This document shows, in pieces, positions 47,100-54,123 of a stretch of DNA of 64,000 nt. A model generated the notes under the pieces. The model searched no databases and was not told the origin of the DNA. It saw only the letters and a program-made list of their open reading frames with translations. Origin of the DNA: Syncephalis fuscata S228 (lineage: Eukaryota; Fungi; Zoopagomycota); the NCBI GenBank assembly GCA_025786725.1, contig JAHLTZ010000003.1, forward strand, positions 310,001 through 374,000. Direction: 5' to 3'. The position numbers and the translations under genes are program-made. Position 1 is the first letter of the stretch; every line of letters begins with the position of its first letter.

Positions 47100-50000
47100 T
47101 TACTGGCAAGGCGTTCGCATTTGCAGCTGACGCCAGCGCATTGTATCTATCGCCATTTCCAGCACAACACGTACTCGGAACATTGCACCAGTTTGCATAT
47201 CTTGTTGTTGCTCCTCTCGTAGTACTACTTGATAAATGGGCACAGTGGCGTCATGTGGCAAAGGCACTATATAGCAATAATCATGAGCTACTAATTCCTA
47301 TCAATTATATAGCACTATGTATTTACTTACCCGATCGATCTCCCATAACAAACGCTCCAATGTAGTGTCGTTCATCAGGCCGGACACAATTAGCATTTTG
47401 ATCAATCCAATTAAGCAGTTCTTTTGACTGGGTCGATGCACCACCCGTATGCGGTGGCTGTGGCGGAGGTGGACCGCCAGCACCTGATGGCAGAGAGGCT
47501 GTGGTGGATAGCCATGAACTGTACCAGTCGGTGGTGGCGGTCCTACTGGTCGAACATGGTAATGATATCCATGAGGCTGTTGTGGCGGTTGTTGTGATGA
47601 TGCATGTGGATGAGGTGGTCCCATCATAGCATGATGTGTTGGATGTGTTGGTGGTGCAGGTGTAGAATTAGAATGCGTCATTGGGTGTCCATAACCTGAG
47701 GGTCGTCGATGCTCTCCACTATGTGGATGTACAACATGTGATGATGATGAAGATGGAGCCATAGGCGTAGATGAATGTATTAAATAGTCATGAGGGGGTG
47801 GCTGTGACATATGTCGATGTGGATGTGGTGTCGATGTCTGTTCATAAGTATGATGTGGATGAGGTGGATGAGGTGGTATATGTTGCATTGAATGGGGATT
47901 TTGTGTCATAGAAGTAGCTGACATGACATAAGGTTGTGGTGGTGGTGGTCCATTCATAGCATGTCCTATATTAAATAGTATTAAACATTAAGTCGATAGG
48001 TATATTATATTAATTACTTACCTTGTGGAGCCGACATAGATGGATGATGATACTGCATTGGTGGTGGCTGTTGTTGTTGCATAGAGCTATGACTAATACC
48101 ACCACTATTACTATTAGAATGTGGCGCTGAACTAGCATGGGCAGATGATGCAGCATGTCCTTCAATAAAAGATATACTGGGTCTTCTATGAGCATGTTGC
48201 TGTTGTTGCTGTTGCTGTTGCTGCTGTTGTTGTGAAGGTTGTTGTTGTTGTTGTGAAGGTTGTGCAGATGCAGGTTGACTACGTGGTGATTGGGCTGGTG
48301 GTATATCCGGTCTAGTATGTGGCGAGTATCTTTGATTACTATCCTGCTTCTCTTTATTCATCACTGTTTTATGAGAATAGGATGAGGCAGGTTGAAAACT
48401 ACCTTGTTGTTCTTGTGATAGTCGATATACATTAAGCGTATCTTGATACGGTGAACCAGATTGCCGCAATCGTTCTCTTGTTACTGCTGGATCACCATTA
48501 GTAATAAATGTATACGATTTCTCTGCTTTATTTGCAAATCCTATTTGATTATGACCATCTCGATCCAGTTGATGCTGTTCATTCTCTGTAGTCTCTTTCT
48601 TACTCGATTCACTTTGTGGATCACATATAGCGATGGTGGTGGCATCTGGTTCTGATTCTAATTTGAATTCTGATTTAGATTTGGATTCGACTGAAGTGTC
48701 ATTGCTGGATATCACAGTTTCATTCTTTGATACATTTGAAGGTGTTTCTACGTCAGTCTTTGTTGTTACAGTCGTCGACGCTATTGGAGAATGAATATTT
48801 GTGTTGGATGAGGTGTCATACTTTGTTCTTTTTACAGAATATAATTGATTATCGTCTTGGTTTACTATTATTAGTATTAATAAATTACTTGATTATCTTA
48901 TATTAATCACTTACTTGGTGTAGTAATAGACGTAGTATTTATAGATACAGTGGTGGCCGCCGTGGTTGATACTGTTGCTGCTGTTGCTGATAGTATTGAT
49001 GTTACAGGTTCATTGGTAGTAATCATCGTTGAAGATGACATCTGACTATCCATAGCAAGTTCTCGTTGACGCTGTGCTTCCTCTTCTTGTTGCTGTGCCT
49101 CTATATTGGTTATTAGTAAAGCAGTTGTAGCTGTATAGCAATTACCTTGATATGCACGCTCTTCTGCTTCTCTTTCTCGTGGTGTCTGGCCTGGTCTTTG
49201 GCGTTTTCTTTCTCGTTTATCATTTCTCTCTTGTATTCGTCGTCGTTTCTCCTCTGCTTCTTGTAAACGGCGTTGTTCCATTTCATGTCGTCGTTTTTGC
49301 ATTCGCTGTTCTTTCTCTCTCGCCTCATCTAATCATTAGCTATTGTTAGCTATTATTATTTACTGTATTGCTGTATTTAATTACCTTGTTGTTTCCGTGT
49401 CTTTTCATCTTCTACTGAACGAATAATAGCCGCTCCTTCAGCAATATCAAGCATTTGCATACGGGTTTCTCTGCCACCTGGTGTTACTGGCACTATAGGA
49501 GAGACGAGAGATGCATTATTGGACTCAGTGGCCGATGAAGGCTGACTTGAGCTATTACCAATGGCTGATACTGATGTAATTGAACCTCCAGTTGTAGTCA
49601 CTAAATAAATACAGTAATAAATACAGTTGGTTATTATCATGCAAATTGTATTTAATTCTATACTATATTGGTCTAATACTTTACCACGAGTAGATGTATT
49701 GATAGGGCGTGGTCGTTGTACACCTGTACGTAGAAATGATGGTGTTTGTTTTGGCATACCTGGTCGAACAGGTGCTGTAGTACGTCGTGGCATAAATAAG
49801 CCTGCTGAACTTGCTGCTGAACTTGGTGCATTTGAACTAGCCTGACTATTTGGCATAGGAGGTCGTGTTCTGCCCATGCCAGTAGCTGTGCCATCACTAA
49901 CAGCTGTATTGCCACTGTTACTATCTGTTGCTGTTGTAGACATAGCATTACCACTACCACTAATATTGATAACTGAAGCCATAGCGCTAACACTAACAGG

Positions 50001-50701
50001 TACTGCGGCCAACATTTGGAATCTCTTTTGTCGTTCAGAACGCGTTGTTACACCTTCACTTGACCGAATAGCCGCTAAAGGTGCTGATGCAGTTGATTTT
50101 GACGAAGATCGATTTTGTTCAACAATAGATTCATTCAAATAAGCTTCTTCATCTCGTGTAAACTGAACACCATCCTGTACTATTACACCGTTTAATATCA
50201 ACTAATTAATCAACTAATTAATTAGTTAAAATATATACTTACATTGAAGTGTTATAGCCTCAATTCGACTACTTAACATAGATATCTGATCTACATCTTT
50301 GACATCTAATCTACCCGTAATGGGTACACGTTTAAACAATCGTCCAAAAGTATTTACCCAGTCATCCGGGTCCTTGGCTGCCAATTCCAATAACTGATTT
50401 CCAATAACCAATGCTATTAATATAGTATAATTACCTATAAACAATCAATTACCTTTGATAATGAATCACCAAGTTCTTTTAGTTGAATCGGTCTGATACA
50501 AGCAATGGCCAGGCAAGCAATAATACGAGATGTTGAATCAAATGTAGACCAATTCGCATATAGTTGCCCTACCAGTTCCTCTGTCAAGTGTGAGGCCAGA
50601 GTAAGTGCACTCACCCAAGTGGGCGCAGATACAGCACTACGTAACAATTCCTGCAATGTATCCGACTCGACAACAACATCGCTAATAGCTAGATTATCCA
50701 T
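47100..50701 (-). CDS. NELFA: Negative elongation factor A (NELF-A/WHSC2) orthologue
   Basis: N-domain ESDT...W...LASHLT...LLELAAKDPDDWV...PITGRL; tentacle motif RETRMQMLDIAE; C-domain NANCVRPDERHYIGAFVMGDRS...YQVVLRE...VVLEMAIDTMRWRQL. All three resemble animal NELF-A blocks, in the same order. Confidence 0.85.
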
Positions 50702-51305
50702 CTCTACTTAGATTAATTCGTTCGTTCGTTAGTTAGTTAGTTAGACGATCAAATAGAATCAAACTAATCCACGGATTCAATATAAAATACGCTTATAATA
50801 CTTTATAAAGTAGAATCGTATATGAATTAGTGTTAGATCTACCTACCTAGTTCAAACAAATGACCGTTATTATCGTAGCTACGCCCACCAGATAAATACT
50901 GCTGGGATCGCGCTTTAATCAACAAATAAATGAGTTTCTTTCTTAATCGATAGTTGTATGCGAAACTAATCGCACACAAAGATAACCAAGGCTATCCAAC
51001 GTCTAGCAGTAATAACACACGCAAAACACTTCTCCTATACAGGTAGAACAGTAGGATAATGGTGTGTATTTAGAAGATGGAAGAGTAAAAGAAAAAGGTT
51101 TAAGAATGAACTATAATAGATCTAACCTAATTTTCCCAGATCTATTTCATTGTTGTTGTTATTGTAGGCGGTATTATTAGATCCCCGATCGCTTCTTTAT
51201 TCACTAATCTACACTACGGTTTTTACAATTATACGCAATAGTAAGCTTTCATCGTCTTAGTATATGTTGCTTGTCACGATAGTGTTGTCTATCGTGTTCT
51301 AGACC

Positions 51306-54123
51306 ATGACTATACCACATCTACGTCTGCCACAGGGTAAGTAATACGGGTAGCACTATAGATCAATATAGATTGAAAAGGGCTGGAGACATAGAGACAG
51401 AGCACTGATATGCAATACCAACTATAACTGTTATTATTTATTAGATGTATATACGCGCCTATATGCAGCTACAAGTAACCATACTGAATTCCAAGCGATA
51501 CTCTACGGTGTATGCGAGGAATGTCTTGGACAAGGATTAGTGGCCCGTGTCAAAGTAGGTTCAACACATACACATACACACTATTTGATCAATATTATTA
51601 AATATTAACGCTAATATTAATAGGGCATATTACCGTATCGTTCACATGGCACAGATTTTGAATCAATGCTTACTTCAATAGTTGCCCGTCCAGATATGAC
51701 TGTATTAGGTGTAGCTGTGGTAGGTCATATACGATTGATAAAAGTAACATATTAATAATTGAAATATTTAATAGATTCCAGATGAACGTACACTTGGATT
51801 GGCAACAGCACATGAAATTGCTGCATCCTATTTACTTACACTTCAAACAACACTTGTTAAAGTAGTAGCAGCTGCACGTCTTCATCTACACTCGAGTAAG
51901 TATTAGCAAACAATATACGTATTGGATGATATATTAATTCAGTATATTAGATGATGCCTATTTTACACACAAAATTGCTAAAGAATGTTCAGCATGGTTC
52001 AGAGATTTGATTGTATTAGTTGGTGGACAGTCAATGCCAATAACTATAAAAGCTGGATCATCTTCGGCATCTTCATCGCCATCTTCATTATCTTCAGATA
52101 AATACACGTCTACGTCGCTTAATAATCGACTAGATGACAATGACAGCCATACATTTGGTGCTCGATTACGCTTCTTTGTCAATCCTTCCATTAGTATTCA
52201 TGATGTATCGACCATGATGCGACAACAGTCTCAAGATAACGTTGTAACAGCAGAACGGTTTAAGAACGCATCACTAGTTGAATTGACAAATGCCACCATT
52301 CATAGTCGTGATAAACTTGATATGGATGGTGAAGATGTAAAAATGCCATTTACAAGATTAGAAAGGATGCCGTTAAGAGAAGAAGAAGAAGAAGAAACAA
52401 CGAATATACTAGAAGATGACGAGAAAGGTAGAGATGGAGATGGAGAAGCGGAAGATGAAGATGAAGATGAAGATAATGAAGAAGAAGAGGATAATGAAGA
52501 TAATATAGAAGAAGTAGATGAAAATGAAATGGAAATAGAACATGAATTAAGATTAAAGGAAGATGACGACGATGATGATGAAGAAGAAACAGATGAAGAT
52601 AATTGTCATATTAACGAGAATACTAATAATAATGAAGATACAGTAGAACACGATGTCAATATGTCTGATGGATTGTGTATTGCATCTAGAAACGATACAA
52701 CACAAGAAATAGATAACAGTTTTGCATCTTATATTTCATCAAGTGGTAATGAAGGTGTTAATACAGAACGGTTATCCACTTATAGACGACATAAAGGACC
52801 TCATAAAAGTAAACGGTTTTTGGATGGACATATTAAAGAGACGACTGCATCAAGATCAACTGCAATGAAATTGGTATGTAATATACTATAGATTAATATA
52901 TGTATATGTATATATGTGTACTTACATAACAATTATAGCCTCGATTAATTACACCATCATTATATGAAAAGTTTACAGTTGAGAAAGGACAAGGATCAGC
53001 CTATTTACAAAGAGTATTAGGTGAAGCAAGGTAAGATGAGTAGTATATTGTTATATAAATGTAATTTAATTATATTTATTTAGTTTGACCAATTGTACAA
53101 ATGAAGATGAACGGGATCTTGTAGAGTCTATTGATGCATTATTAGAGGAATCATTGCCACATGAACGGCGTGAACGATTAGAACGGAAACAACAAGCGTT
53201 GGAAAGTAGGATTCGGTAAGTATAGTGTGTATTATTTAACAATAGCAATTACTTATTATATAAATAGTAAACTTAGTACTAAAATTGATGTATACGCCGA
53301 ATCACATCGAGAATATACTGGACTTACTTATTTATGGCGATTACTTGAAGCATCACCAGAAGAATTGTTTCATCAATTAGATGCTATGCAATTAGCTGGA
53401 CAACATAGTAATATGACATCTCAATCAACTATTAATGGACAAGCATCTACTACATCATGGCATGAAAGAAGTATACAGCCACCAACTATAACATCTCCTA
53501 TATTGACTGGACCGACACTATTACATGGATCTACTGAAACAATGACATCATCTCATCCTTCGTATTATTGGCATGGTCAACATGTGAATACTAGTGATCA
53601 TTTACCTCGAATGACTACAAGTAATGAACATCACTTTATCTCAGAAGAGAATACATTGGCAACAACAGGAATGATACAACAACAACATCGACGATCTACT
53701 AATAGACCAAGAGATCCTGATAGTACAGATACTGAACCTGAACCTGAACTGTCAGTATTGAATTATCATTCACGAAAGATATCACCAAGTAAAGAAGTGG
53801 TTAATACGTCCTCTATTCCATCTACTACTATAGGCACCCATCAGTCTAATTTAGGTGTCAATCATTATACACAGCCCAATCCTGCACCAACATCAGATTT
53901 ATATACATTAGCGTCAATTGCTCTTCCATCTGATCCTATTACTGATCCTATGGTTTATTCATCTACCGATACTACTACTAGTACTGCTACTGTACCAGTA
54001 TCTGCTACTTGGACTACTACTACTACTACTACTGATAAAATAGTATCTGAAATTGTTCCAGCTCCTCCTCCCGCTACCGCTTCTTCTTCTTCCTCTTCTC
54101 ATACTCATCCAACTTTAAAATAG
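51306..54123 (+). CDS. Hypothetical protein: possible MPN-like N-domain, acidic tract, coiled coil, S/T/P-rich tail
   Basis: Multi-exon model from ATG 51306: TEFQAILYGV...VKGILPY...TVLGVAV, a D/E-rich block at 52380-52600, and HERRERLERKQQALESRIR. Confidence 0.6.

Follow-up and report, generated by a model that had tools for sequence, protein, structure and literature searches.

We identified in Syncephalis fuscata, a mycoparasitic fungus (Zoopagomycota), a gene that we take, with a probability of about 0.78, to be a transcribed and spliced orthologue of NELF-A, with nine coding exons and a product of 1041 aa. NELF-A (PANTHER PTHR13328) belongs to the complex by which RNA polymerase II (Pol II) is kept near promoters. 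The gene runs on the minus strand from position 50701 to position 47100 of the window, the 64,000-nt stretch of DNA that was analysed. It is 'NELF-A-like' in the usage of Chivu et al. (bioRxiv 10.1101/2023.02.19.529146), who listed such proteins for Rhizophagus, Lobosporangium and Basidiobolus, and it is a further member of these already known fungal genes. A first-pass annotation of the locus had called it a NELF-A orthologue in a fungus, and this identification holds, given the spliced 1041-aa ORF, a match of its orthologue to the Pfam family NELF-A_N, and the presence of NELF-B and NELF-C/D in the genome.

Transcript contigs showed that the gene is expressed and contains nine coding exons. 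The ATG at 50701 and the CDS stop at 47100 are exactly the limits that the first-pass annotation had drawn, and all eight modelled coding introns (GT..AG) were matched exactly by joints in the transcript contigs. The contigs were interrupted at the repeat in exon 7, which is spanned by a contig of X2. The features of the gene are as follows.

50704..50846, minus strand: 5' UTR intron, about 143 nt, GT..AG, with a 3-nt ambiguity; the loose end of contig X1 at 50706 equals window positions 50850-50879 on the plus strand.
50453..50701, minus strand: exon 1, 83 aa, covering the first half of the helical domain at the N-terminus; splice 50393/50453 in a transcript contig.
50394..50452, minus strand: intron 1, 59 nt, phase 0, GTAATT..CAG; X1 joint 50393->50453.
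50243..50393, minus strand: exon 2, 50 aa, later half of the N-domain, bearing the motif D-x-DDWV ... P-x-TG.
50180..50242, minus strand: intron 2, 63 nt, phase 1; joint 50179->50243.
49685..50179, minus strand: exon 3, 165 aa, completing the N-domain and continuing into a linker that carries the short conserved motifs GV.F..[ED]EEAYL, IRSSEGV.TR, AGLFMPRR and KQTPSFLRTGVQRPR.
49601..49684, minus strand: intron 3, 84 nt, in frame and stop-free; joint 49600->49685.
49385..49600, minus strand: exon 4, 72 aa, with the ETRMQMLD motif, the 'tentacle' block of the first-pass annotation.
49329..49384, minus strand: intron 4, 56 nt; joint 49328->49385.
49146..49328, minus strand: exon 5, 61 aa, charged and K/R/E-rich in translation.
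49101..49145, minus strand: intron 5, 45 nt, in frame; joint 49100->49146.
48915..49100, minus strand: exon 6, 62 aa, acidic, then S/T-rich.
48865..48914, minus strand: intron 6, 50 nt; joint 48864->48915.
48022..48864, minus strand: exon 7, 281 aa, spacer of low complexity, specific to the lineage, in which a CAA/CAG poly-Q tract occupies 48188-48263; its ORF had no Pfam match.
47966..48021, minus strand: intron 7, 56 nt; joint 47964->48021, cut +1.
47331..47965, minus strand: exon 8, 212 aa counting the extra base; P/H/Q-rich, leading into the C-terminal domain (NANCVRPDERHYIGAF).
47495..47496, minus strand: missing base, 1 nt absent from the assembly relative to the transcript; apparent frameshift.
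47267..47330, minus strand: intron 8, 64 nt; joint 47266->47331.
47100..47266, minus strand: exon 9, 55 aa plus TAA, last part of the C-terminal domain (YQVVL ... LEMAIDTMRW); equals residues 224-278 of the NCBI protein P0005.

The four strings of the window on which the original claim was built are all present on the minus strand in the claimed order: that of the N-domain lies in exon 2 (ORF 50226-50444), RETRMQMLDIAE in exon 4 (ORF 49377-50201), NANCVRPDE in exon 8 and VVLEMAIDTMRW in exon 9 (ORF 47100-47267). The human strings set beside them were also correct: the N-domain string occurs in PDB alignments, and the other two in the human NELF-A sequence that Chivu et al. give in their supplement.

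The family assignment depends mainly on a metagenomic relative. When 1.8 billion library proteins were searched exhaustively with exon 1 by HMMER, the only matches were a fragmentary relative (P0001; E 7e-14, 42-47% identity) and two repeat proteins. Identity to the relative was 37% in exon 2, 55% in exon 3, where the motifs form invariant blocks, and 58% over the motif of exon 4; a charged exon like exon 5 is also present there (L012 882-1109). Exons 2 and 3 of the relative form one ORF, intron 2 being absent. Judged by sequence, the relative (L010-L012) is an unambiguous orthologue of the S. fuscata gene. Two metagenome scans with the exon 3 and exon 2 alignments yielded no confirmed locus, and word searches, run for the ORF of the relative, the exon 8 ORF and the C-domain, returned only self-sequences and the NCBI fragment P0005.

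Exon 1 of the relative (P0001 residues 23-82) matched positions 10-68 of Pfam NELF-A_N (PF23553) with 17.8 bits, and its exon 2-3 ORF matched positions 71-123 with 19 bits; the E-values for the two exons were 1.4e-3 and 3.4e-3. The two matches are colinear; simply added together they reach 36.8 bits, above the cut-off of 27 bits. When the exon 2-3 ORF was compared with the PDB, its top three matches were the human NELF-A chains 5l3x_A, 6gml_U and 8uha_U (E 5.8e-4 for 5l3x_A to 5e-3; residues 74-133). Exon 2 of S. fuscata alone scored 12.3 bits against NELF-A_N (E 0.16, profile positions 70-106). Profiles built from the window and the relative together found NELF-A in the PDB at E 0.0027 (human 74-104, exon 2 profile) and 0.047, and NELF-A ranked first among single-stretch matches. 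Because an unambiguous orthologue matches NELF-A_N, the N-terminal domain of the S. fuscata protein is, on exon-wise scoring and mainly through that relative, assignable to this family; it is homologous to the N-terminal domain of human NELF-A (PDB 5L3X chain A, 6GML chain U; PF23553).

The protein was also compared by eye with the NELF-A-like proteins of Basidiobolus meristosporus (ORY06555.1), Lobosporangium transversale (XP_021882417.1) and Rhizophagus irregularis (XP_025172955.1). Their features come in the same order as in the Syncephalis protein, with the N-domain first and the ...EM...W tail of the C-terminus last: a helical N-domain with D-x-D-x-WV, then G[VI].F...AYL, GLF..R..SFLR, [RK][IM]Q[ILM]LD[IL], a K/R/E-rich stretch and a C-domain ending in ...[FLI]EM....W. 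At 1041 aa, the Syncephalis protein has about double the length of that of Basidiobolus (493 aa) because of S/T/Q/P/H-rich insertions in exons 6-8, and its sequence is so diverged that the exhaustive search with exon 1 found none of the three fungal proteins.

The first-pass annotation had named three blocks of likeness to human NELF-A, and these are colinear in the two proteins, with a much longer spacer in Syncephalis. For the N-domain the likeness stood, with statistics obtained mainly through the relative; for the tentacle and the C-domain it is one seen by eye, with no significant match. Thus, ETRMQMLD resembles by eye the [RK]IQ[IL]LD[IL] of the fungal proteins and the KLLDISE of the human one, and the linker and LD-type motifs are conserved between the two Zoopagales species and, again by eye, in other fungi and human. 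In contrast to human NELF-A, whose HDAg-like, Pol II-binding region (PROSITE PS51838) lies at about residues 189-248, the Syncephalis protein showed no detectable region of this type and no significant tentacle or C-terminus match in Pfam and phmmer tests: Pfam HDV_ag had no match in the window, phmmer with the end of exon 3 plus exon 4 did not find human NELF-A, and an alignment of exon 3 to human residues 199-222 was colinear, weak and not significant (second domain, -3.5 bits).

The conserved C-terminal domain of NELF-A has the pattern ..EDR/PEK..I..F..G ... [FLI]EM....W. By eye, the C-terminus encoded by exons 8-9 resembles those of the fungal NELF-A-like proteins and human NELF-A, about one third of its positions being identical to the Lobosporangium one. 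A phmmer search of the PDB, which includes full-length human NELF-A, with P0005:180-278 gave no match, and neither Pfam, an ESM Atlas feature search nor a word search returned anything for the C-domain beyond itself and P0005. Its AF2 model, of low confidence (pLDDT 54), has two helices and three strands.

The first-pass annotation had also proposed a genome search for other components of the system, and both partner subunits were found in S. fuscata, each as four colinear exons: NELF-B (PF06209 COBRA1) at C13:183722-184730 (best E 6e-13) and NELF-C/D (PF04858 TH1) at C361:273392-275474 (best E 4e-10). All COBRA1 and TH1 exons scored above the curated cut-offs, the weakest of each only with in-frame neighbours. 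The search for HEXIM (PF15313), likewise proposed, gave no match at E <= 1 in the genome, nor did that for 7SK RNA (RF00100), and the control genomes were also without a match. According to Chivu et al. (10.1101/2023.02.19.529146), NELF-B and NELF-C/D are of ancestral origin and yeasts have lost them, NELF-E occurs only in Metazoa, the HDAg profile occurs only in animals and Capsaspora, pausing indexes are higher in species with core NELF, and what NELF-A-like proteins do cannot be concluded firmly. The surprise implied by the first-pass annotation is absent, ancestral NELF-B and NELF-C/D, their loss in yeasts and NELF-A-like proteins of three early-diverging fungi having already been published. 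Zoopagomycotina become the fourth fungal lineage with a NELF-A-like gene alongside NELF-B and NELF-C/D, which favours a loss in Dikarya yeasts rather than a gain in animals.

The helical N-domain, encoded by exons 1-3, would dock on NELF-C/D in the manner of the human NELF-A/C subcomplex. The linker motifs and ETRMQMLD, followed by the charged stretch, may be the equivalent of the 'tentacle' that contacts Pol II, the small domain at the C-terminus may correspond to the conserved NELF-A tail, and the long low-complexity spacer of exons 6-8 is probably a lineage-specific insertion. The protein would then be a likely subunit of a three-subunit NELF (A, B and C/D) that slows early Pol II elongation, with pausing of the weaker 'core NELF' type rather than the 7SK/HEXIM-controlled type of animals. 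The 'animal-like pausing complex' of the first-pass annotation went beyond the evidence, in that HEXIM and 7SK were not found and the HDAg/Pol II-binding region is without statistical support.

These two observations, together with the published restriction of the HDAg profile to animals and Capsaspora and the caution of that study on the function of NELF-A-like proteins (10.1101/2023.02.19.529146), would also suit a true NELF-A homologue whose complex takes no part in promoter-proximal pausing and has instead some other role linked to NELF, such as in RNA 3'-end or cap-binding-complex pathways, or is a scaffold with a non-conserved Pol II-binding part. We consider this rather improbable; the conservation of the linker and LD-type motifs and the higher pausing indexes of core-NELF species argue against it. 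A bolder proposal, which we put forward tentatively and hold to be somewhat doubtful, is that the linker and LD motifs in early-diverging fungi truly correspond to the tentacle with which animal NELF-A binds Pol II, and that these fungi, Zoopagomycota among them, have retained a NELF of three subunits (A, B and C/D) and NELF-dependent pausing without NELF-E, HEXIM or 7SK. If so, the Pol II-contacting part of NELF-A would be older than Holozoa, against its published origin in animals and Capsaspora. The short conserved linker motifs are concrete candidates for the elements by which NELF-A ancestrally contacted Pol II.

Several searches bear on whether the likeness to NELF-A might be due to chance or to a generic repeat signature, the gene then encoding a nuclear protein of low complexity, specific to the lineage and with a single HEAT-like helical motif. 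The motif in exon 2 is indeed HEAT-like, and artificial alphaRep HEAT-repeat proteins outscored NELF-A, through summed short repeats, when the profile of this exon was used; TPR_28 gave a sub-threshold match on the exon 2 ORF that scored above NELF-A_N. As a single sequence, S. fuscata exon 1 had no Pfam or PDB match, its profile did not find NELF-A in the PDB, and Foldseek found no PDB match for its low-confidence AF2 model (pLDDT 65). Nothing significant came from exon-by-exon Pfam and PDB phmmer searches of the window, nothing from a six-frame PF23553 search of the S. fuscata genome, and nothing usable from an ESM Atlas feature search with exon 2. Exon 1, the tentacle and the C-domain are without a direct match. 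However, two separate exons of the orthologue match successive halves of NELF-A_N, the relative's match to human NELF-A runs beyond the HEAT-like motif through P-x-TG at an equivalent distance from the N-terminus, the motif order over the whole length is that of published fungal NELF-A-like proteins, and the partner subunits are present in the genome. A likeness due to chance or to a generic repeat signature is very improbable.

Near 47495, in exon 8, the frame of the assembly changes. Transcript contig X1 carries one extra base (A) behind 47495, which removes the sole frame break and gives the 1041-aa ORF. An intron as the cause was rejected, since no AT-rich GT..AG candidate was available and the transcript contains a 1-nt insertion. 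X1 differs from the assembly at four further positions, and strain variation or an assembly error is thus likely for the missing base. A pseudogene broken by this frameshift, as the frame change without a usable intron might suggest, is scarcely credible when the transcript reads through, the frame downstream of 47495 retains the conserved domain, and the other differences between contig and assembly point to strain or assembly error.

The public NCBI model of the locus is a 278-aa C-terminal fragment annotated as a 'hypothetical protein' (P0005), which maps at 100% to 48082-47103 and is without about 760 N-terminal residues of the gene product. It skips 47500-47525 at the assembly indel. Our gene model corrects this truncated annotation of S. 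fuscata, in which the indel was masked by a false 26-nt intron.

Open reading frame pieces on the minus strand, the first starting with an ATG at 50701, were separated by short AT-rich GTAAGT/GTAATT...AG stretches, and nine coding exons were modelled from the reading frames and splice signals. One intron in the 5' UTR was added from a further joint in a transcript contig.

about 50704-50846, minus strand, 5' UTR intron
50701-50453, minus strand, exon 1
50393-50243, minus strand, exon 2
50179-49685, minus strand, exon 3
49600-49385, minus strand, exon 4
49328-49146, minus strand, exon 5
49100-48915, minus strand, exon 6
48864-48022, minus strand, exon 7
47965-47331, minus strand, exon 8
47266-47100, minus strand, exon 9

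Spliced contigs of this NELF-A-like locus were present in the public run X1, which is taken as RNA on the index's guess only; as assembled contigs, they reveal presence and splicing, not expression level or transcript ends. The modelled borders were exact for all eight coding introns, including an in-frame intron of 45 nt (49101-49145), and the 5' UTR joint was found in the X1 contig as well. Exon 8 is shifted in frame in the assembly near 47500-47480, and no plausible candidate was found for an intron that would account for the change. The X1 contig carries one additional base after 47495, at the frame break, with which the reading frame is unbroken (3126 nt including the stop; 1041 aa). Since this contig also differs from the assembly at four other single bases, the absence of the base after 47495 most likely reflects a mistake in the assembly or variation between strains, and a pseudogene is very unlikely. 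The 1041-aa protein is expressed. No second copy of exon 1 was found in the S. fuscata genome. The X1 contigs stop at a CAA/CAG repeat in exon 7 (48188-48263), which encodes a poly-Q tract; one contig of a second run, X2, spans it. Upstream, the X1 contig over exons 1-7 extends approximately 2.6 kb via the 5' UTR intron (50704-50879 and beyond 50880), and it may be joined with the transcript of a neighboring gene at 51306-52200.

Syncephalis fuscata belongs to the Zoopagales (Zoopagomycota). The exon 8 reading frame, used as the query of a word search, returned its 278-aa 'hypothetical protein BDF19DRAFT_431079 [Syncephalis fuscata]' (P0005), which was placed at 100% identity at 48082-48020, 47963-47526, 47499-47332, and 47267-47103; the window is therefore from this species. 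This NCBI/JGI model begins at 48082, on an internal Met of exon 7, and therefore lacks approximately 760 N-terminal residues of the 1041-aa protein; a spurious intron of 26 nt (47500-47525) carries it past the frame break. Since no S. fuscata protein came up in the exhaustive search with exon 1, the N-terminal part appears to be absent from public protein sets. Our model thus corrects the public annotation of this gene.

The same exon 1 search yielded one relative, P0001 (E 7e-14, 47% identity), encoded on contigs L010-L012 of JGI metagenomes 3300059434, 3300051386, and 3300051380; this relative of Syncephalis occurs in all three samples. Identity between the window and the relative was 42-47% in exon 1, 37% in exon 2, 55% in exon 3, and 58% over the motif part of exon 4, and the charged exon 5 is common to both. 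Introns 1 and 3 are apparently kept in the relative's orthologue; intron 2 is missing, and exons 2 and 3 form a single reading frame of 182 aa. The best three PDB matches of this frame were all human NELF-A, at human residues 74-133 (5l3x_A, E 5.8e-4; 6gml_U, E 2.9e-3; 8uha_U, E 5.1e-3). Against the 146-position Pfam model NELF-A_N (PF23553), it matched positions 71-123 (19 bits, E 1.4e-3) and the relative's exon 1 matched positions 10-68 (17.8 bits, E 3.4e-3); the separate exons thus fit consecutive halves of one model, and their simple sum, 36.8 bits, exceeds the 27-bit cut-off. Orthology to this relative places the predicted N-domain of the window's protein in NELF-A_N. The relative is the only bridge from that protein to the NELF-A family.

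Searches with the spliced model were run exon by exon, and the window's exons gave no match singly against Pfam or PDB sequences. The exon 2 reading frame reached only 12.3 bits against PF23553 (positions 70-106), below a stronger, itself sub-threshold, TPR_28 match, and a six-frame scan of the S. fuscata genome with PF23553 gave no match. With profiles of the window and its relative, NELF-A was the best single-stretch match (E 0.047 and E 0.0027). Within exon 2, D-x-D-x-WV constitutes a HEAT-like signature, and artificial alphaRep proteins scored above NELF-A with the exon 2 profile by adding eight short repeats; unlike these, the NELF-A match is a single stretch that reaches through the P-x-TG segment. 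The NELF-A N-domain may hold a single HEAT-like hairpin, a feature that can lead to misleading matches with repeat proteins. The motif A-x-K-D-x-DDWV (50350-50385) fits the PBS-HEAT/alphaRep repeat consensus.

The first-pass annotation had aligned three blocks with animal NELF-A, of which the N-domain held through the relative (E 5.8e-4). NELF-A was not found with the exon 3 end and exon 4 stretch (tentacle), nor with the spliced C-terminal domain (P0005:180-278) against a PDB set including full-length human NELF-A; Pfam, atlas, and word searches on these blocks gave no match. Confidence in the AF2 models was low (C-domain, pLDDT 54; exon 1, pLDDT 65), and Foldseek gave no match. The putative tentacle and C-terminal blocks are therefore without statistical support here, and their likeness is one of motifs seen by eye. 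Chivu et al. (10.1101/2023.02.19.529146) provide, in their supplement, the sequences of human NELF-A and of NELF-A-like proteins from Basidiobolus, Lobosporangium, and Rhizophagus. On a reading of these printed sequences, without a tool score, the Syncephalis protein has the same motif order from end to end: G[VI].F...AYL; GLF..R..SFLR; [RK][IM]Q[ILM]LD[IL] with a K/R/E-rich stretch after it; and a C-terminal domain with ..[DE][ED]R..I..F..G..., YQ[IV]V, and [FLI]EM....W. Approximately one-third of C-domain positions are identical by eye between Syncephalis and Lobosporangium.

Chivu et al. (10.1101/2023.02.19.529146) reported apparent NELF-A homologues in unicellular eukaryotes, included three early-diverging fungi in their NELF-A-like set and tree, and detected the HDAg profile in animals and Capsaspora only. 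Fungal NELF-A-like proteins are thus already known, and the S. fuscata gene adds one more fungal subphylum and an annotation correction, not a new kind of gene. Our literature search found no further papers on NELF and 'early-diverging fungi'.

The same authors found NELF-B and NELF-C/D to be widespread, with losses in S. cerevisiae and S. pombe. Both partner genes are present in the S. fuscata genome: COBRA1/NELF-B (C13:183722-184730, best E 6e-13) and TH1/NELF-C/D (C361:273392-275474, best E 4e-10) each gave four colinear exon matches, all above curated cut-offs, with the weakest exon of each passing only with its in-frame neighbors. HEXIM and 7SK gave no match in this genome, and neither did the controls. 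The lack of any HEXIM or 7SK match, with NELF-E probably absent too, argues for a system simpler than the animal one. By analogy with the human structures 5l3x, 6gml, and 8uha and established knowledge of NELF, the N-domain would bind NELF-C/D, and the linker and LD motifs, which are conserved, would reach Pol II; together, A, B, and C/D would form a complex that slows early elongation. Pausing indexes are higher in species with core NELF (Chivu et al., 10.1101/2023.02.19.529146).
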